DNA of 64,000 nt from Zygnema circumcarinatum SAG 698-1b. Lineage: Eukaryota > Plantae > Zygnematophyceae. The notes beneath the pieces are model-generated. The model was not told the DNA's origin. It worked only from the letters and a program-made list of their open reading frames with translations, and searched no databases. The translations under genes were made by a program, and so were the position numbers. Shown here piece by piece: positions 3,025 through 54,709 of this stretch (position 1 is the stretch's first letter; each line of letters starts with the position of its first letter). The stretch spans positions 1,302,001 through 1,366,000 of the forward strand of contig CM074807.1 in NCBI GenBank assembly GCA_037447605.1. Direction: 5' to 3'.

Positions 3025-4766
3025 AGCCGAAATATTGTGTAGTTTTAGGAACGTCAAAGCTGAATGCTTTACGTGGTTTTGGGCTCGGAAGAGCATGAGA
3101 GATTCTGTAAAAAAACACGGGCGGTGTGCTCAATGGACAATGTGTGCATGCAATGTGCATCACAACCGTTCCAATGTACCATTTCAGTTGTCGTTGGCCA
3201 AGTAGGATTTCCCTCATTATCATCACCGTCGTACTTTGCAACTTCCTGCCATTCGGTGTTCCTGTGGTTGCTTCACACATGTGACTGCCTTCCGTGTTTG
3301 ACTTAGACAAGCAGGTTGTCCACAGAGCATTAGTAAATTATGAAGACGATGATGAATATTCTGATGTGATACGTAGATACGTGAGCTGCAAAATCAATGT
3401 AAACCCACGTGCCTTTCCATGTCTTCGCTGCACTGTACAAGGTGGTCGATGCAAAACGTCCGCTTGGCAAGAATAGCAAGCGAAGGACCGTCCCGCACAA
3501 ACCCCGTGGAGCAGGCGGCGACTCGTCTGGATTCCAGAGGACCCTCCTCACGCGCCCCCTTAGATCACCTCCAATCTCCTCGTCCTTAAGGAGAGCGAGC
3601 CAGCTGGGCGTCGGCGACGTTCACGGCCACGTTCTCCGGCGGCCGCTCAAGAGGGGCCGCGCCCGCCCGGGGGCCGCGGACCGCTCAGCCCCGTCAGTCG
3701 CTGGACCTACCGGTACGGTACTGTACTCCCAAAAATCGCGGCGCAAGAAATCGGTCCATGTGAAGGCTCCTCGATTTTAGGGTGTTCTAGCGATTGGGAT
3801 GGACTTGGACAATTGGCAATTGGCACGAGGGCATGGAATACGACCAGTAGTTCCTCGTGGTTCCCCATGCTGCTTTTGTCCATGTACATTTGAGGGCATC
3901 ATCGCCATCGTGAGATCAATGCCACATCCTCCCCTTTCATGGGGGCATGGTGGTCTTTGATACACCCCATCATCGTTGTCGATGAAGTGACGTCAGCATA
4001 TCCACGACAATACCGTATCCATGGCGTCATCGACTTTCACGAGCACAGGCCGCGGGCCAAACCGGGGATTCGTACGGACCAAGTTTGGCCACAAAAAAGG
4101 CGGTCCCAAAATTTCAGCGGGGCAGAGGAGCAACGTGTTTCACGGTTCTACGTTGTCCGTACAAAAATGTGTCCTGCCCGCTGTGCGAGGGCCGCCCTGA
4201 TATTTCACCGCGGGCGACCGCCACGTGGCAGCATGGAAACCACAAGCGAGGGGTAGCGCTATAAAACAAGAAACTGTACGAACATGTCGTGTTTTCAGAT
4301 GTTCGTACGGTACGAACCCCACTCGCCAGACAAAACGGACAAAAGAGCGTGCCGGATCGTCGTCGTCGTCTGGATTCTGGAAGGCTCCCCGCTGTACGGT
4401 ATAGCGCCGACACTGTACGGCCAATCGTCCGTACAGCAGCCCATTCAAGTTCGTACGACGCCTGGTCGGCCATGATTCGCCGACGGCTGTCTGGGCCTGC
4501 CCCCATTGGCCCCTCCAGCCACGTGGCCGCCCGGGACCGAAGTCGTCGGACAGAATTGAAACACTTTTATGCCCGGCTCTTTTTTTTTGCACACTCCGAC
4601 CAATGAGCGTACGCCGCGTGGAATTTGGGCAGAAAAATCCGCTGGTCGGGCAGGTCCAGCTGCCCGCGCCGAGTTTTCGCTGAAGCAGCCCCCAAGGGCT
4701 CTCTGGTCGGTACTTGGGTCCCGCAAGAAAAGGTCTCTGCTATCGCCCACATTCACCCCCCTCTAC

Positions 4767-17009: not shown

Positions 17010-17170
17010 TTAGCCTACTGACCGTACTGACCGTACTAGTCAAACTGTACTAGGCTTACGATTCGTACTAGCCGTATTGACCGTACTGTACTAGGCTTAA
17101 GAGCCGTACTAGCCGTATTAGCCGTACTGTACTAACCTTACTAGCCGTACTAGCTGTACTAGCCGTTACG
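17010..17170. repeat. 9-bp minisatellite ([a/g][g/a]ccgtact-like) inside MITE copy 1
   Basis: Repeated tagccgtac / tgaccgtac units. Confidence 0.85.
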
Positions 17171-27471: not shown

Positions 27472-30400
27472 CGGGGACGCGCGATGAGGGCATAACCCTT
27501 AATGAACCGGCGATAGAAGGAGGTGAGTCCCAAGAAAGACTTGAGCTGAGTGAGATTCTGTGGAATGGGCATAAGGTCAATTCTTCAATTTTGTCAGTGA
27601 TGGTTTTGGGCCATTGATGCGGCGGTGCCAGAGATAGGTAGATCTCTGGTATTCCATTTGCACTTCTTGGGTGCAATCTTCAGACGCGCACTGATGAGCC
27701 GTTGCAGGACTTGGTCAATGTGTTGCAGGTGGGAGGACCAGTCCTTGCTGTGGATAGAAGCATCATCCACGTAAGGTTCGCAGAAGGCACGACAGGGGCC
27801 GAACACCTGGTTGGCCAGGCGCTGGTGAGTCTGGCTGGAATTCTTGAGCCCAAAGGGAAGCACCGTCCACTGCACGAAGCGCGTGGCTGTGCGAAGCCCG
27901 GTCTTGCAGCGATCGGCCTGTCGCAGGGGGATCTGCCAGAAGGATTTCTGCATGTCAAGTGCCGAGAACCACCGGTCATCAGGGGAGACGCCGTGGAGAA
28001 TCAGGTCCACATCCGGTAATGTATAGGGATCCCACTTCGTTATGGCATTCAGTTTCCGATAGTCTCCACAGAAGCGGAGTGTGCCATCCGGCTTTGGGGG
28101 CAGAACGGTCGGGCTGGCCCAAGGCCCTTCTCCAGGTTCCATCAAGCCGGCAGCCACGTTCTCATCGATCTATCGTTCGACATCGGCCTGCTGGCGGCGG
28201 AAGCGGTGAGTCATGGTCATCCGCGGTGCATCCCCGTATCGATGTAGTGCACTATCCGGTGGGTCTTACGATGTCGGCGAAGATGTAGATAGAAACTAGA
28301 TGATTCGGTAGCAGCGCCAAGCGTAGTGAATGCTGATCGGGTCACCAGAGAGGACTGCTGGTGTAACAAACCCGCCCTCGGCAGGGTTCGAACACAGGAC
28401 CTCCCGGTACCCACACCAGTGCTTTACCATTAAAAGGCAACCGCGGATGTAAGTACTAGGCCATACAACCCATGTATAGCGTTTCGCTACATTCCTCCCC
28501 ACCTAAACCGGGCTCGTCCTCGAGCTCACTCAAGGGTTTTCACGAGCAGCGTTCAAGCTCCTTCAACACATGGACTACGGCCTTAGCCCCTCAGGCCACT
28601 AAGGAACGGGTTCCGTACCATGCTCAGAGATCACGGTGTTTTTAGGGTGGATTGCAAATACCGGGCCCTTGGCTCTGATACCACTGTAACAAACCCGCCC
28701 TCGGCAGGGTTCGAACACAGGACCTCCCGGTACCCACACCAGTGCTTTACCATTAAAAGGCAACCGCGGATGTAAGTACTAGGTCATACACCCCATGTAT
28801 ACCGTTCGTTACATTCCTCCCCACCTAAACCGGGCTCGTCCTCGAGCGCACTCAAGGGTTTTCACGAGCAGCGTTCAAGCTCCTTCAACACATGGACTAC
28901 GGCCTCAGTCCCGAAGGCCACTGAGGAACGGGTTCCGTACCATGCTCAGAGATCACGGTGTTTTTAGGGTGGATTGCAAATACCGGGCCCTTGGCTCTGA
29001 TACCACTGTAACAAACCCGCCCTCGGCAGGGTTCGAACACAGGACCTCCCGGTACCCACACCAGTGCTTTACCATTAAAAGGCAACCGCGGATGTAAGTA
29101 CTAGGCCATACAACCCATGTATAGCGTTTCGCTACAGCTGGCCCCAATCGCATCTGACCCTCTATTTCCAGCCACTCCTCATCACCAATGATCTCGTGGG
29201 GGGGAAAGCTGGGTGCAGCTATCACCGGCGGCAAAAGTTCTTCCGTCGGCGCCCAGAGAGCTAGACTCGGAGGAGCAGGAGGGGGAGTCTTGCATCGGTA
29301 TCAGAATTGGCCGATCCATAGGAAGAATGGGGGCTGCCGACCGCATGGTACATGGTGATCTCTGGGTAGGAGACCTGCGCCGTGGCGTGGCGTTTGGGGA
29401 AGGCGGAGGTGGCAAGGGACTCGAGGATGATGGGGAAGGAGCAGTCTGTCCCGCCAACAGATAAGTACAGCTGACACGTAGCAAAGTCGATTCGTGCTCC
29501 CATCGCAATGAGCCAATCTGAGCCCAGCAGGATAGAATAGTGCTCAGCGGCCGTGATGACCGCATTCACCGTGGCTCCCATCTCGCCAAGGCTGATGATC
29601 ACTTGGGCACTGCCCAATCCTTCATGTAGGCTCCCCTCAACCCCCACATATCGGGGAATGGGCTCGAGCGTCTTGTCCAACTTAACCCCTGCGGCCTTCA
29701 TTCGCGGCCCAGGCCGAACGTCGCGCATAGCTCTGTGTCGATCATGGCAAGCTTTCTTTGGGATGACCGTTGTATACATTGACAATAATACGCCCGTTAG
29801 GTGTTGGGATCGGAGGAGGATGCGGGCTCTGGCGAGGATGGCGGGGAGAAGCGGGCGGAGTGGAGGAGGCAGGTAGCCATGTAGTGTATATGCGGCAAGG
29901 GGATGTGGGAGGAGAGGTGCCATGGTAACGTGGGAGGCCCGCAGGGGTGGCCTGTGCTGTCGGCCAACTGCGAACTCTGGTACGCAGCACGGAACCCGGT
30001 TGCATCAAGCTGGCCCAGCCAGGTAATGCCGATCTTATGCCCTCCCCATGGTGATGAACCATGCGTTTGTCGAGGGATAAGCCGTCTGTCGGGGGTGAGT
30101 GGAGTGGGTGTTTGCACAGGGGTAAAACAGGCTGCCCAGGGCGATGGGAGGGATGGCGTGCATCTCTTACGTCGCTGGCAGTGCTCACCGACAGGCTGCC
30201 TTGCGTATGCGGCTCCCTCCTCATGAATGGTCAATTTCCTCCTCGGCGTGGATCCCAATGGATGACCCGTGGAAGGAGGAGGACTGAGATTCTTAGGGGG
30301 TGGCGACGGTGGAGCCGTGCGAAGGAGAGCTGGCGCGTTGACATCGGCGAGGAGGAATGGCGAGGGGGATGTGATTGCCAGAGATCACTTTGGTTGTGAG

Positions 30401-46729: not shown

Positions 46730-47374
46730 NNNNNNNNNNGTGACTTTCCAAAATACAACCTTTATCTAAGTTGAGTACTGTTTTCCCTTTGCTGTCACTA
46801 TGCCAAGCTACCATCTTGTTCTATTCTGCCTTACACTCATCCCAATGACCGATGATAACTAGAAGCCTAGCTAAGAGAATAGCCGAGGAGAGGACAGGGG
46901 AAGAGAGCCCCCAAGGAAGGGCCCTTTGCGCATCGAGTCCAGCCGCCGGTGGGAACATCTTCAGGATCCCTACGTCTTCCGCTGCGCGTACCTCTGAATC
47001 TCCCGGATCCTGGCTCTATGCTGCAGGCAGACCCACAGCACCAGCCCAACCCTTCATTAGTTTCAGCACGGACGCGCGAGTGGCCGTACAGCACCTGCAA
47101 CTAGCTCAGCAGTCTTCTCTTAACCCCACGTATCTTGTGCTACAGGGGTCTACTGTATGTACCCTTTCCAATGAGGCAGTACGGACTCGAGTTTGGACTT
47201 TTCCGAGGCCGGTACCAGGTACCGTACGGTAGGCCTGCGCAGGTCGGACCGTACCATACCCATACCTATGGAAGCCTGGCGGCCGCGCCCCCAACCCTAA
47301 CAAGGAGGAAGGGAGGGAGGCCCGGAGGAGGAGGAGGAGGAGGGGGCCTGCAAGATAGGTAGATAGATAGATAG

Positions 47375-48463
47375 ATGGCGCGGGAGGGCGGCTACGGCGT
47401 CGCGACAGACAAACCGACTCGGAAGCGAAAAAGTCGCAATCGTGGTGAGAAAAAGGGGGCGGGAGAGAGTAGCATTGGGGATGCTCTGAGACTAGATGCA
47501 CAATTGTTCAAGCATGCATGGAACGGCATTGACACGGTAGAGCACGATTGGGAAGATGAATTAAACGCGACAAATTTTTATAGTGATCTTCAATTTAAGA
47601 AAAAAATACTAGCGCATCTGAAAGTGATTGAGAATGACAGGGTAGTTTATCATCTAGTGGTTAAAAATGGCATCAAAAATATCTACTGCATCACCATTCC
47701 TCCCAATTTCATAAAGTCTTTTTTAAGTTTGCCTTTGTGGGAGGACATTCAAGACGCGGCACCATGGGTTTCCCAAATGGTGGGGGGGATAGTTCGGAAT
47801 GAGTCACACCGTGCCAACAGCAAACTATACATAGTTGGTGTGCGCAAGTGTCCTCGGGGTAAATCTTATAAAGGCTGTGAGTATTTCGGAAGATATATTA
47901 GGAGGCAAAAGTCAGAGGTTGTGAACAGAGAGTATGAGCGGGTGAGAGAGATAGTAGACCGCTACCAAAAAAGGGTTGGCGAACTGACAAAGCTTCTGTG
48001 GCCCTCTGCTTCTGCGGCAATGTCAGAAGCCATGAGAGAGTCAGGTTTAGGGCAGGTCTGCCCTTCCATTTTTAGTGCGGTTTCTATGTCTTTGGACTAC
48101 TCTTCAGTTCTGCACAAGGACGGACAAGACAAAGGTGCAACGCACCTTCAGTGGTTCAATCAGTCCTCCAAGATAGATTCTTTGATCACACGATTTGTGC
48201 TCCCAAGCATCAGGTGCATATATGAGGCCACACATGGTGCAAGCATTTTGTTCTTGGGAGCAGCTCAGCATGGAACGGAAGGCATCAGGTCCGTCAAAGG
48301 TGTGCGGGGAATCGCTTGTTACACAAACAACGAAGTGTTGAGAGCGGCGACTGCTGCAAAGAAGGCGTACACCAATCGAGGAATAACGCTGCCTTTAGAC
48401 CGTTTTGGGTCAAAAATTGGTAGCGACGGCTCATTCTTGCGAATAGAAGGGAACAGATTTTGA
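47375..48463 (+). CDS. TET/JBP-family (Tet-like) Fe(II)-dependent nucleic-acid base dioxygenase, 362 aa, intronless
   Basis: FSAVSMSLDYSSVLHKDGQD (H247-x-D249; compare metazoan TET FSGVTACLDFCAHAHRD), FVLP, ATHGASILF (compare TET PTHGSILIE), QHGTE (H299), VRGIACY (R311..Y316), upstream IVGVRK..FGRY, basic NLS-like RKRKSRNR. The ORF is uninterrupted. Family assigned by motif recognition only. Confidence 0.85.
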   Translation: MAREGGYGVATDKPTRKRKSRNRGEKKGAGESSIGDALRLDAQLFKHAWNGIDTVEHDWEDELNATNFYSDLQFKKKILAHLKVIENDRVVYHLVVKNGIKNIYCITIPPNFIKSFLSLPLWEDIQDAAPWVSQMVGGIVRNESHRANSKLYIVGVRKCPRGKSYKGCEYFGRYIRRQKSEVVNREYERVREIVDRYQKRVGELTKLLWPSASAAMSEAMRESGLGQVCPSIFSAVSMSLDYSSVLHKDGQDKGATHLQWFNQSSKIDSLITRFVLPSIRCIYEATHGASILFLGAAQHGTEGIRSVKGVRGIACYTNNEVLRAATAAKKAYTNRGITLPLDRFGSKIGSDGSFLRIEGNRF

Positions 48464-48873
48464 TGCAAAGGTGCATTCAAAAATCTATCGTTCACACTAC
48501 ACCAACATGTCATATACTTTGGTTTGAGCTCAAAGACAAGAAGCATCTTACTTGTGGCTGCTTTTTGCAGGGCACGGAAGGCCCTTTCATACCGTAACCC
48601 TTCTCTCCTTCGGCCTTTTCTCTCTCCTTTCCCCCACTTCCTCCTTTAAATGCACGCTTGAAAAAGAATGACATTAGATTAAATAAGGCCCTGCATGTTT
48701 CTATAAAGCCGGCCTTCCTCTCACAGGCCTCCAGGCTGCATACTGTAATCGTCTTAATCGTTTTCAAAGTGCTTCACTTTTTAGGGTTCCTGTGGGCTGT
48801 CCATTCGCCCCAACTGTTGCTTCGCATGATGTGCATCACAACAGGTCGGTTCTCGCACTACGCTGCAGTCCAC

Positions 48874-49050
48874 GGATTAGGGTTTCTGCAGAGGCTTGTC
48901 ACTGGATAGAGGAGGCCATAAGGTGGTGTTTCTGCCGAGACTGCTCACTAGAGAGAGGAGGCCATGGATTAGGGTTTGCAGAGCTCGCTCACTGGATAGA
49001 GGAGGCCATGGATTAAGGTTTCTGCAGGAGTTTCTCAACAAGGAGAGGAC
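48874..49050. repeat. ~45-bp tandem repeat x4 containing a telo-box-like TTAGGGTTT
   Basis: Units like ggattagggtttctgcagaggcttgtcactggatagaggaggccat starting near 48874, 48921, 48966 and 49010. Confidence 0.8.
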
Positions 49051-50465
49051 ATCGGCTAGTGTAGCAGTCTATTTGCAGCTCCATGGAGCCGGTTAGCGTA
49101 TTAGAGAGCCTGGGAGCAGAAATAACGGCCATAGTGACTCCAGTATCCGCATGCATGCATGCTGCTCGTGCTGCTCATGGTGCGTGGCCTCACTCCAAAC
49201 GGCTCTCCAGAGAGCGGCCGGCTATTGGTGCTCTCATTTATCACGAAAGGAGGTGTGTTTTCAACTCCTCTGTTCATTTTTCTGCTTTTGGATGCTGACT
49301 ATTTGCCCTCCATGTTTTCCATCCCACATTCATTGGCACTAGCATTTATTCCGAATCTGGAATTCAAATTCTTGTTTCTCATAAAAGCGCAGGGGGAGGG
49401 CTCGCATTTATCCTCCATTCATGTCTGACTAAAGTGACTTATGCTTTTCTATATCAGTGAATAGAGACCGAGCCGGGCACATAAAATGCTCATTATTCAG
49501 TCTTTAGTGTTTTCAATTTCGAACCAGCGACTAAAGTCCTGCACCAATACATACTCCATCATGCACATCAGCCAGCTGCTGCTCCTGCTGAATGTTTTTG
49601 TGTCATTCTAGATCAATTTCAGTAGTGATTGTGCCAACTTAAGAGCAATATAGAGCAGGTCATATCAATGGGCATATAAACATCAAGAAACAGGGTAGGC
49701 ACAGGAAATGAAGATGTAGAACGACCCATAGAAAGCTTACTTCTCGCAATGGTGAAGTCGATGAATGTTTGATGCAGCGTTTGCGTACTATAGAACGTGA
49801 ATGTTTCATTTTTTTCTATTAATTCTTGCATGTTTTTTTCCTTTAAGCCTTGATACCGTCCCTCTGAGTGTTGCCGATAAGTCCGATGGGTCCTCAGTGT
49901 TTTATTCGCACAATGAAGCTGCATTGAGCTTGTGTTAAATTTGAGATCTGCCTTGTTTGATCTGCTTTGTGCAGCTGGGTGGCTCCGTGGCAGTGCTAAT
50001 TATCCAGGCAAGCTACCAGGGCTTTTGAGCGCGGCCTATTTTGACTGTGGTACGGAATCATCTGATCACCTTCTAGATTGCAGAATTGTTTTTTGATTAC
50101 TCCTGTGAATGTCGCAGTTCGTATAGCGTGGGTAATCGCATTGCATCTTGAGCTCATTCAAGGTTAATGCTGGGCATCAGAACGTCAATGGCATTTGACA
50201 ACTAATCAAGCATAGTAGGATTTGCAAATAAATTCCGTTTTAGTGGTCCACCTAATCCATGAGGCGAAGCTAGTTTGACCTCAACATATGAGGAGCTGCA
50301 GCCGAATTGCGTCATTTCAAATACTTCAGAATCCATTACATGGTTGGTGTATGTTCACAGTCTCCTATGAGTCTGTAGCTATTGCAGAAGATCAGCGGAG
50401 CCCTTCCTTGTCAAGAATTACATCATGCTAAGAACTGCAATCTGATCTGACCTACTCGTCTGTGA

Positions 50466-50710
50466 CTCGTGCTCTGTCAGACCCTCTCCATTCCCATTGA
50501 CATCATCACCTTCAGCATCATTCTTCACTGAACTTCTCCATTGTGGGAGTCCTCGCCGGCTTCTTCTTCCTCCTCATGCACTCGTATCTGGTTATCAAAG
50601 GGGCGGTGGTTCACCCACCTGCCGGAATGGACGACGTGGCTACTCCTTTTGGCAATGGCCGTATACGACCTTATAGCGGTCCTCATGCCAGGTGGGCCAA
50701 TAGCATCCTG
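50466..50710 (+). pseudogene. Presenilin gene fragment (TM4-TM6) with frameshifts
   Basis: LSIPIDIITFSII / [15 protein letters not shown] / [31 protein letters not shown], read across two frameshifts and followed by a stop. It matches the plant presenilin LPEWTTW..YD..AVL.PGGP signature. Confidence 0.85.
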
Positions 50711-52379
50711 ACACCTGTAACCTTTCTGCTTATCTAATGTCACTTGCTACTTCCCCAAATAAAGCCAACCAGGAAGAGAAGCAGAAGCTTTGACATGCTT
50801 TCTAACAGCAGATGGCACGTGGAGTGTGCAGAAGGAAGAGAAAATTTCGTCGAGACAAGCTGCCGCAGGACGGAACCCGCCCCTGCAGCATTGTCGTGCG
50901 CGGGAGGACGCTTTGATAGCTTACAGAAACGCACTCTACGCCTCTCCCTCTCTCTCCCTCTCGCTCTCTCTCCTCCCTCTCTCCTACCTCGCCTCTCTCG
51001 CCTCTCCTCTCTCCTGACGATTACGGCAGCCATAGCCGCACTGCACTCCTTCCAAACTGCACTCCTTCCAAAGGGGGCCCCCTTGGAGGGGGCCGCTGAG
51101 TCCTTTGCAGGAGCCTCTCAGCGCAAAGCCTTCAACAGAGTATGACATGAGAAGATGAGCAGCTGCAACAGTCAGCATCTAGTGCACTTTAGGGATAATC
51201 TTTTGAAAGGTTGACGGTTTTCCACTGTCCTACTTTATCACCAAATGGATGCCATCTCCGCTCCTGTGCTGGCCACTCATGCAGTGGGGAAATGTTGCAC
51301 ATCAGATTCAGGTTTGGTTTGTGAGGAAGGCTATCGGTCAATTCAACCATTCATTCCATTTCGCCTCTGCTTTTTAATCAAAGTTTAAATTCCATGCATT
51401 TTAAATCCTAACTTATCTTTCGTGGAAGCCGGGAGTCGAACCGTGCAGACTACAATGAAATCCTGTGCTTAACGCTTTAATTCCGTTTCCAATATCTGTG
51501 AAAATGCAAGTACATTGAAAGCCCACACGTAAAGCTGAATTGAAGTGGAAGTATTTATTATTTCAAGCATCAAGCAGAAATTTTGCCACTCTGGACAATC
51601 TGATATCCAGAAAACTTAAAAAACTGAAACATTGGCTAAAACCCCTGAGTGACTGATCGGATGAAGGTTAAACCCTCGTCACGCCTTAGCTTTGTACTGT
51701 CGAATTCTTGGTTCTCAATTGAACTTGTAAACTTCTCTGGCTAAAGGGAGGCCTGTGAGTTGACGTAGCCTTTCAAACTAGATGGAAGATCATCTTTCAC
51801 AGAGGAAAAATTCTTGTCCATAACAGATAAACGTTGAGAAACCATGCAGAAACGAGGGTTTTTTAAGATGAGAGCCTTACATGAAGTGAAAAATAATATC
51901 AATTGCGCTGAAAGGGAATCATTAATTATGTAATTAGTACACAAGCTAGTCGTGGAGTTGTTCCTATGCAGTCACCCTAAACGAGTATCTGAGCAAACAA
52001 GCGCATTGCTGCTGAGAATATCTGAGCCTCAAAGTGGCGAGGATGCTGCCTGCAGGAAGGAAGCAGGATGTTACTTTTGATGGAAGCCCTGCACCAGCGA
52101 CTGGTGGAACAGCGTTTTTTTTTTTTTTTTTTTGAAGTAATTTGAAGGTACAGGCTCACACGGCACAGGCTCCTCAGAGAATGGCAATCAACCCTGGCCT
52201 GGAACACAACTCAGCCAGAATTCGTCGAGCAAGAGAATATGAGCAGGAGTAGAAAGATGGGATTCCGGGGAAGGGGATTCTTTGTTGTTGAAACAAGCTA
52301 GATACAATACAGTACGACGCCGTATCGTACTGTACAGTACAGTGGAGGGTCCTCGTATTTACCGCCCGAAGGAGTGCGT

Positions 52380-54549
52380 TGTAGCAAGATAAGTGGGGTT
52401 AAACAAAGATTGCTGAGCTAGCTGCAGGTGCTGTACGGCCACACGCGCGTCCGTGCTGAAACTAATGAAGGGTTGGGTTGGTTCTGTGGGTCTGCCTGCA
52501 GCATAGAGCCAGGATCCGGGGGATTCAGAGGTACGCGCAGCGGAAGACGTAGGGATCCTGAAGATGTTCCCACCGGCTGCTGGACTCGATGCGCGAAGAG
52601 CCCTTCCTTGGGGGCTCTCTTCCTGTAACAAACCTGCCAACTGCAAGGTTTGAACACAAGACCTCCCGGTATCCACACCAGTGCTTTACCATTAAAAGGC
52701 AACCGCGGATGTAAGTACTAGGCCATACAACCCATGTATAGCGTTTCGCTACATTCCTCCCCACCTAAACCGGGCTCGTCCTCGAGCGCACTCAAGGGTT
52801 TTCACGAGCAGCGTTCAAGCTCCTTCAACACATGCGCCACGACGGTCTCAGCCCCTCAGGCCACTAAGGAGCGCTTTCCGTACCATGCTCAGAGATCACG
52901 GTGTTTTTAGGGTGGATTACAAATACCGGGCACTGGCTCTGATACCAATGTAACAAACCTGCCAACTGCAAGGTTTGAACACAAGACCTCCCGGTATCCA
53001 CACCAGTGCTTTACCATTAAAAGGCAACCGCGGATGTAAGTACTAGGCCATACAACCCATGTATAGCGTTTCGCTACACTTCCCCTATCCTCTCCTTGGC
53101 CAGTCTCTTAGCTAGGCTTCTAGTTATCATCGGTCATTGGGATAAGCGTAAGGCAGATTAGGACAAGATGGCAGCTTTGCATAGTGACAGCAAAGGGAAA
53201 ACAGTGCTCAACTTAGATAAAGGTTACATTTTGGAAACTCACCCCAGCCAGCGGTTGGCTGGGGAATGTCATTACAATGAAATTGTCTTCTCACTGAAAT
53301 CTTTGTCTAGCTGGGCTGAATGGGACGTCTAAATGCTATCAGCAAGAAGAGTCTCTCTCTCTCTCTCTCTCTCTATCTATGGCATGGGACTCTCTCTCTC
53401 TCTCTCTCTCTTACTTAGCATCTGTTGCTGTAACTGAAGAGGAAGGAAAAGAAGAAAGAAGAACAAGAAGACAAACCACACAGCAAATACATAGCAAGTA
53501 GGATGAAGATAAGTGGGGTTAAACAAAAATTCTTTGAGAAATTTGGCTACTTGGTCTTTAATACTGAGGCTTGTAGCAGCGGAGTCTTGAAGCTAATGAA
53601 GGGTTGGGTTGGTTACATTAGATTACACTTGCTTGTGGCCATGGGGAGGCAGGTCAGGGGATTGAGGAGAATGCCAGCCTTGGTATGAGCGTAAAGGGAT
53701 CCACGAAGATCAGGCCCCACGGTTCTGGCTGAGGGCTACGATCTTGTGAAGAGCCCTTCCTTGGGGGCTCTCTTCCCCTATCCTCTCCTTGGCCAGTCTC
53801 TTAGCTAGGCTTCTAGTTATCATCGGTCATTGGGATAAGCGTAAGGCAGATTAGGACAAGATGGCAGCTTTGCATAGTGACAGCAAAGGGAAAACAGTGC
53901 TCAACTTAGATAAAGGTTACATTTTGGAAACTCACCCCAGCCAGCGGTTGACTGGGGAATGTCATTACAATGAAATTGTCTTCTCACTGAAATCTTTGTC
54001 TAGCTGGGCTGAATGGGACGTCTAAATGCTATCAGCAAGAAGAGTCTCTCTCTCTCTCTCTCTCTATCTATGGCATGGGACTCTCTCTCTCTCTCTCTCT
54101 CTTACTTAGCATCTGTTGCTGTAACTGAAGAGGAAGGAAAAGAAGAAGGAAGAACAAGAAGACAAACCACACAGCAAATACAAATACTAAGCCCAGCACT
54201 AAAAGACAAAACAGCATCACCGACATCCCATCTACTTAACAGCGACAATAGATCTTGAGTCCTAGCGTTGTGACCTGCGATTGGCTGGCACTGCCGCCTT
54301 GAGCACGGCCCGGCTTCGTGGAGCCTTGGATAGGTCCAGCGAATGATTATGGCTGACACTCATGGGTGATTCCCGGTGCGCCTTGGCGGATGGTGTGCTG
54401 TTCCGTGGCCCGCCAGCGCGTAAAGCTACGCCTTCTCTCAATCTCCGTTGGCAGCTCCTGGATTCCGTTGATCCATGACACGGAAGATGCATACGTCAAG
54501 TACAATCGAACTGACGCCAAGCCGTCGAACGCAGCTCCGTTACGCTACA
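52380..54549 (-). mobile_element. Family A solo LTR with a partial internal duplication and a TRIM insertion
   Basis: Reverse complement starts TGTAGCGTAACGGAGCTGCG and ends CTTATCTTGCTACA; 4-bp TSD GCGT; 53079-53490 is repeated at 53773-54181. Confidence 0.9.
52624..53078 (-). mobile_element. TRIM copy 3 (LTRs 52624-52753 and 52949-53078)
   Basis: Two apparently identical 130-bp LTRs, PBS TGGTATCAGAGCC, PPT, 5-bp TSD CTTCC. Confidence 0.95.
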
Positions 54550-54709
54550 GCGTCCTCAATATTTTCGCCCCGATTTTGCCGAAACCACCTTTTTGTACGG
54601 TAACTTGTGTTAGCCGTACTTTTCGTACTTTTCGTACTTTTCATACTTTTCGTACTTTTCGTACTCTTGATGCTGTTAAATTTACTATACGTACTAAGCG
54701 GGTTACGGG

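Follow-up and report, generated by a model that had tools for sequence, protein, structure and literature searches.

The streptophyte alga Zygnema circumcarinatum appears, from its sequence, to carry a real, expressed, single-copy and divergent TET/JBP gene whose predicted pocket leans toward that of CMD1, the enzyme that uses ascorbate (vitamin C) to write glyceryl-5-methylcytosine (5gmC) in Chlamydomonas reinhardtii. The 362-aa open reading frame (ORF) is located at positions 47375-48463 (+) of the window, i.e., the whole stretch of 64,000 nt that was analyzed. The preferred reading, to which we give a probability of roughly 0.45, is that the ORF encodes a TET/JBP modifier of 5-methylcytosine (5mC) that has a CMD1-type pocket, does not use 2-oxoglutarate (2OG) and is probably ascorbate-dependent. 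The gene is the most direct candidate found in this analysis for vitamin-C-type 5mC chemistry in a streptophyte.

The ORF itself is established. Its frame runs in the translated window from ATG to TGA without interruption, as compared to a longest stop-free frame of 203 aa in 200 shuffles of the 5.2-kb segment, which bears out the clean 362-aa ORF described in the initial annotation. DNA contigs and RNA contigs agree with the assembly over 47389-48919, with zero differences in the listed pieces, and the ORF is therefore not an assembly artefact. Contamination as a source was ruled out by the continuity with nuclear long terminal repeats (LTRs), by splicing and by the presence of the stretch in sequencing runs of eight studies. 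The encoded protein is strongly basic (pI 9.6, net charge about +18). The residues H247, D249, H299, R311 and Y316 of the reported HxD...HxT...R..Y pattern were found in the translated ORF where they had been placed, as was a basic N-terminal stretch of Lys and Arg (residues 14-27, 47414-47455, +), which by its composition resembles a nuclear localization signal and suggests that the protein would be nuclear.

Kinship of the ORF product with the TET/JBP family, as a divergent member, had been proposed in the initial annotation and is supported by several sequence comparisons. Tet_JBP was the family in 24 of 30 ESM Atlas feature matches (top score 0.97), all named Atlas neighbors were Tet_JBP, and the nearest clusters were ordinary Tet_JBP clusters of phages and basidiomycetes, the top clusters being largely viral. 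The Pfam check that had been suggested returned the expected Tet_JBP and Tet-like families, but only as sub-threshold matches (E 0.05-0.15) far under the curated cut-off. A phmmer search of 1.84 billion proteins identified three credible relatives, P0001 (E 3.6e-8), P0002 and P0004, at 26-33% identity; P0003, a repeat protein, and P0005 were judged to be chance matches and were excluded from the family. P0002 matches Pfam Tet_JBP at E 0.002, and a profile of the three relatives alone gave the query 72 bits, versus 7 or less for shuffles. Word-indexed protein searches found either no relatives or P0001 only, and none were found in IMG/VR, JGI metagenomes, GTDB genomes, annotated phages or PHROGs; searches of protein and genome databases did not find close homologues.

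Family profiles built from the query and its three distant relatives (four proteins) were then searched against the PDB, and CMD1 (7CY4, one of the structures 7CY4-7CY8) was the top match for every family profile and the sole match at E<0.1 (E 7e-4 to 3e-3). CMD1 still ranked first with the query-free profile (E 0.046); the query sequence alone had no CMD1 match in the PDB. In the same search NgTET1, CcTET and TET2 were unmatched by the family profile at E<=10, and weak matches to non-nucleic-acid oxygenases were found at E 0.3-0.7; PDB matches to ribosomal L16 and GAPN were put down to chance. By manual count from the printed alignment, about 18 of 66 positions are identical between the query and CMD1, including the motif FVLPS. 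A double-stranded beta-helix fold would be expected from these matches; AlphaFold models from two runs reached a pLDDT of 33-34, and fold searches from these models were meaningless.

Residue matches to CMD1 are established over CMD1 residues 334-407, and the roles of these residues in CMD1 are taken from its structure paper (PMC7854593). The iron triad H247, D249 and H299 aligns with H345, D347 and H397 of CMD1, with the same 52-residue spacing between the two His; P0002 has an HxE variant of the iron motif. D252, at H+5, aligns with CMD1 D350, which reads N4 of 5mC (PMC7854593), and Asp is also found here in P0001 and P0004. S237, S239, L258, W260, F274 and T301 align with S335, T337, I356, W358, F371 and T399 of the CMD1 ascorbate pocket, the hydroxyl contacts to ascorbate (S335, T337 and T399) being matched by S237, S239 and T301. 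Residues S237 to W260 are encoded at 48083-48154 (+) and H299-G-T301 at 48269-48277 (+). T337, W358 and T399 have been shown to be essential in CMD1, where W358 fills the site of the 2OG-binding Arg of TET2 and NgTET1 (PMC7854593); in the four family proteins the corresponding residues are S/T, W and T/S. W260 (H+13), which is invariant in the four proteins, matches this Trp that blocks 2OG in CMD1. The unrelated oxygenase 3W20 (E 0.34) weakly aligns a Trp in the same place, and a Trp at this position is therefore not diagnostic when taken alone.

The last core strand, V310-R-G312-I-A314-C-Y316-T-N318 (48302-48328, +), carries Y316 as the putative base-stacking aromatic. The position of the canonical 2OG Arg, six residues before this aromatic, is V310 and reads V, V, V and L across the four proteins; the Arg that binds the 2OG C5 carboxylate, by which a canonical 2OG TET would be recognized, thus appears to be absent from all four and not to be shifted. 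The Ser position two residues further on is an invariant Gly in the family (G312, in a register counted from Y316). The initial annotation had considered R311 as this Arg shifted by one residue, a claim that does not stand, as R311 is L, Y and M in the relatives. Its hunch that co-substrate use may be atypical is now better founded: CMD1 is the nearest structure, the Arg-x-Ser for 2OG is missing in the family and the CMD1 Trp is invariant. Further upstream, R157 of a GVR-type motif (47843-47845, +), followed by K at +1 and G at +5, is invariant in four homologous segments and represents a candidate, proposed without direct alignment, for the equivalent of CMD1 R244 and TET2 R1261.

Several CMD1 residues are unmatched. 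V342 is replaced by Ser, and S414 and R418 of the last strand have no counterparts in the ORF product, where Ala (A314) and Asn (N318) are found in a register inferred from residue spacing to the aromatic; F245 and H249 correspond, also by inferred register, to Lys and Gly. F245, H249 and R418 are essential in CMD1 (PMC7854593). The ORF product would therefore most plausibly work like CMD1, yet it lacks part of what defines a CMD1-type protein; with H249, F245, S414 and R418 unmatched, formation of 5gmC is a candidate activity only, and the partial match leaves room for a new product.

Transcription and splicing of the gene are established from contigs of public sequencing runs. The stretch is present in 20 runs from eight studies, and contigs were compared over 47000-52500. 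Three runs, from three studies, were treated as RNA by their behavior, none being registered as RNA: their depth is zero at 47184-47367 and 51416-52150, their cover of 47389-48919 is unbroken, and their contigs contain three GT-AG joints 3' of the stop codon that a DNA run does not have. The initial annotation had called the gene intronless, which is correct for the coding part, yet the 3' UTR has three introns. Exon 1 (47310-49252, +; 5' end approximate) contains a short 5' UTR, the whole ORF and 789 nt of 3' UTR, and is followed by intron 1 (49253-49974, 722 nt), exon 2 (49975-50049), intron 2 (50050-50480, 431 nt), exon 3 (50481-50691), intron 3 (50692-50831, 140 nt) and exon 4 (50832-51290, end approximate). 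The orientation of the intron ends places transcription on the + strand. Although contigs do not demonstrate that these pieces belong to one molecule, they are most simply read as one transcript that spans about 47310 to about 51290, carries the ORF wholly in exon 1 and has a spliced 3' UTR of 1.5 kb, and the suggested check for expression was thus answered with a spliced transcript in all three studies. A coding role of the downstream exons was dismissed, since none of them, taken singly, has a long open frame or a Pfam match, and Rfam found no structured RNA. A GTAC-rich tract at 47177-47260, just 5' of the gene and without RNA contig cover, represents a putative promoter; a similar tract is found upstream of a host gene near 4250-4460.

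Nonsense-mediated decay is known to be set off by introns that lie far 3' of a stop codon, and a long spliced 3' UTR such as this one is typical of its targets; protein output of the ORF is therefore putative. The 3' UTR apparently extends across a duplicated part of another locus, because the DNA run contains a second, diverged genomic copy of the region 3' of about 48.9 kb (48900-52300; roughly 90-95% identity) and RNA contigs connect part of 50699-50744 to unrelated sequence. Positions 51057-51146, which have CT..AC ends, are missing from one DNA contig, as would be seen if the second copy lacked a minus-strand intron. Within the 3' UTR, a 44-46 bp unit is present three to four times at 48867-49037, and a 116-nt back-jump found in all four runs suggests that the assembly has collapsed one unit.

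The setting between two transposon nests that had been described for this gene was confirmed: the ORF sits between LTR ends at 46740-47143 and from 52380 onward, and remnants of gypsy-type reverse transcriptase, RNase H, integrase and protease are found in the same window. The left LTR (46740-47143, +), of a gypsy-type family, has its 3' end toward the gene and starts at an assembly gap (46730-46739), across which the TET segment is joined to the left nest and to the host genes by scaffolding. The right LTR (52380-52623, -), of the same family and about 94% identical, is inverted and is interrupted by a TRIM-like insertion at 52624. A composite element formed by two inverted LTRs was rejected: both LTRs point inward with their 3' ends and are best read as separate insertions. 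No terminal inverted repeats and no convincing terminal hairpin were found in 47144-52379, and termini of the inverted-repeat or Helentron type, considered as candidates around the gene, were rejected; the limits of an element could still lie farther out, past the LTR nests or the gap at 46730. No transposase was found in the segment, and the ORFs scanned nearby have LTR-retrotransposon domains only. DNA depth over the ORF is 65-74, versus 60-62 at single-copy neighbors, with zero listed differences; assessed at 90% likeness, the TET-like gene is single-copy, and the window contains no second TET copy.

Taken together, the preferred reading would have the ORF product act in the nucleus as a TET/JBP-type Fe(II) dioxygenase that binds DNA by its basic surface and flips 5mC into its pocket. 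There, D252 would select C against T and A by reading the N4 amine, the base ring would be stacked by Y316 and probably by R157, and iron would be held by H247, D249 and H299. The Arg-x-Ser that anchors 2OG would be replaced by Val-x-Gly, with W260 filling the vacated space, and the co-substrate is therefore probably not 2OG. The best candidate is ascorbate, which S239, W260 and T301 would hold; glyceryl-5mC or a related adduct would then be formed, and 5mC thereby removed or masked. Like CMD1, the gene was most likely brought in as cargo of a transposon or virus; it would now be stranded, with a host-type promoter driving its transcription. If the enzyme alters methylation, it would do so in trans across the genome and not specifically at the flanking nests. 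A more far-reaching form of this reading can be put forward tentatively, namely that the protein is the first member seen of a small non-2OG TET family, distinct from CMD1 proper, that uses ascorbate or another metabolite to form 5gmC or an undescribed 5mC adduct in streptophyte nuclear DNA.

The alternative that deserves most attention, even though we consider it doubtful, is a dead or fading relic, i.e., a TET/JBP cargo of an old transposon or virus whose frame is still open and whose transcription reads through into a duplicated host segment, which loses most of its mRNA to nonsense-mediated decay and whose product at most binds 5mC DNA without modifying it. Loss of the 2OG Arg together with several unmatched CMD1-essential residues would fit such a relic, as would the three introns 3' of the stop, where the genome has another, diverged copy of the region, the failure of database searches to find close homologues and the damaged look of two relatives (a frameshift in P0002; a start past an in-frame stop in P0001). 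However, the 362-aa frame is intact although the elements around it have decayed, relatives of no more than 24-29% identity retain the Fe triad, D252, W260 and T301, and in all three RNA-like runs the depth of spliced contigs is near that of ORF contigs (34 vs 31, 40 vs 42 and 102 vs 132). Mobility is a separate question. The initial annotation had regarded the gene as recently acquired or mobile and as a possible anti-silencing factor for neighboring transposons, and cargo of a still-mobile element within or bounded by the flanking nests has precedents: CMD1 lies in DNA-1_cRei, a transposon without recognizable transposase, other Chlamydomonas TET/JBP genes are carried by Helitron2 elements, and fungal transposons have repeatedly captured TET/JBP genes, many of them carrying such genes. 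In the present case, ORF depth is at the single-copy level, which was the copy-number check suggested for mobility, terminal inverted repeats, a convincing hairpin, a transposase and a second TET copy are lacking from the segment or window, the inverted repeats represent the 3' ends of two LTRs and splicing is host-like; continued mobility is thus improbable, and anti-silencing of neighboring elements lacks local support on the same evidence. An older origin as transposon or virus cargo is plausible, because of these CMD1, Helitron2 and fungal precedents and the two damaged-looking relatives.

A conventional 2OG TET that converts 5mC to 5hmC, 5fC and 5caC would have to hold the 2OG carboxylate with another basic residue, such as R305, R311 or a lysine. 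Such an arrangement could be accommodated by the Arg that all four family proteins have 4-6 residues past the second His, by the ordinary Tet_JBP clusters nearest in the Atlas and by literature reports that 2OG-binding residues are subfamily-specific. It is nevertheless unlikely, as the Arg six residues before the aromatic has been called strictly conserved in 2OG users and CcTET loses activity without it, as V, V, V and L occupy this position in a family with an invariant CMD1 blocking Trp, and as R311 is unconserved and out of register. The chances of another substrate (thymine as in JBP, RNA bases or 6mA), or of a small-molecule oxygenase of the same fold, are slim: D252 at H+5 disfavors T and 6mA, since the H+5 Asp excludes T in CMD1 (PMC7854593) and an acid at H+5 blocks 6mA in TETs other than CcTET (PMC11040006), the protein is strongly basic and all named Atlas neighbors are Tet_JBP, even though N318 stands in for the His or Arg that reads the cytosine edge and the weak matches to non-nucleic-acid oxygenases would point the other way. 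Moreover, on a metagenome contig, an ORF with a C5 cytosine methyltransferase domain lies about 550 nt downstream of the relative P0007 and in the same orientation, a pairing with TET/JBP genes known from phages; by analogy, this linkage, seen at one locus, supports 5mC as the likely substrate. No methyltransferase or glycosyltransferase remnant was found near the gene in the window.

Among known systems, CMD1 has the most in common with the ORF product. In addition to being the best PDB profile match, CMD1 shares the HxD...H spacing of 52, the H+5 Asp, the S335/T337/W358/T399/F371 positions, the FVLPS strand, the lack of a functional 2OG Arg, a green-lineage host and a transposon-rich setting. 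CMD1 has a length of about 530 aa, and the ORF product is shorter (362 aa); it also differs in a coding region without introns, a streptophyte host, a Val in place of the turned-away Arg410, the unmatched H249, F245, V342, S414 and R418, and in that no enclosing transposon was found around the ORF. Canonical TETs (human TET2, Naegleria NgTET1 and Coprinopsis CcTET) share the HxD...H triad, a stacking aromatic near the end of the last strand, an H+5 Asp or Asn (TET2 and NgTET1) and a likely N-terminal Arg; by contrast, their Arg for the 2OG C5 carboxylate (R1896, R289 and R385, respectively) is missing here and none of them was matched by the family profile. The TET/JBP proteins of fungal transposons (AG, PU and PE types; PMC12730594) are also compact, very divergent and found mainly by profile or structure comparison, the PE type being closest to CMD1 by HHpred (PMC12730594), and the HxE variant found here in P0002 occurs among them; unlike the present gene, which is single-copy and for which no element boundaries were found, they are multi-copy in defined DNA transposons. 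Phage and virus pairs of a C5 methyltransferase and a TET/JBP gene resemble the P0007 locus, and the top Atlas clusters are largely viral, but searches of phages, IMG/VR and prokaryotic genomes gave no match and methyltransferase or glycosyltransferase remnants are missing near the gene. Finally, the gene differs from TET-carrying DNA transposons (KDZ, CMCT, Helitron and DNA-1_cRei) in that 47144-52379 has no terminal repeats or hairpin with a target-site duplication, in its single-copy depth at 90% likeness and in the lack of a second copy in the window.

Both green algae and transposons are already known to carry TET/JBP genes. In the literature searched, which did not include the Iyer and Aravind surveys, no report was found that a streptophyte alga has a TET/JBP or CMD1-like gene. 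These surveys are said to mention plant-lineage TET/JBP examples. [quoted passage not shown] Both the range of 5gmC and the question of co-substrates could be tested with this gene, as the alga is cultured and many public sequencing runs exist. If active, the enzyme would show that TET-type chemistry exists in the plant lineage, in which glycosylases are held responsible for demethylation, and would tie the ascorbate pool to DNA methylation. The lineage that gave rise to land plants would then have a TET-type demethylation route linked to a redox metabolite besides the DME/ROS1 glycosylases, and bisulfite methylomes of such algae may conceal a modified base.

A number of further observations were made on the relatives and on the window. 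The P0001 frame (L001:346-1707) is immediately preceded by an in-frame TAG, which closes a 79-aa frame upstream and may be a nonsense lesion or be read through, and in P0002 (L002:1-893, 75% GC) a frameshift splits the N-terminal part (1-348) from the core; by sequence, both relatives thus look damaged. P0002 and P0001 come from the same run (ERR12684107), and their GC contents (75% vs 52%) therefore possibly reflect two source organisms. The methyltransferase ORF downstream of P0007 (L003:1322-2695, +), uncalled on a JGI metagenome contig of 60% GC, matches Pfam at E 7e-28 and PHROG at E 3e-36. The TRIM-like element in the right-hand LTR (52624-53078) has LTRs of about 135 bp, a 322-bp period and a Met-type primer site, and is also found as a tandem at 28362-29136. 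GTAC-rich tracts are present at 4250-4460, 17020-17160, 47177-47260, 52300-52345 and 54590-54700, 5' of genes and adjoining family-A LTR ends, and family-A LTRs may favor promoter-like sites.
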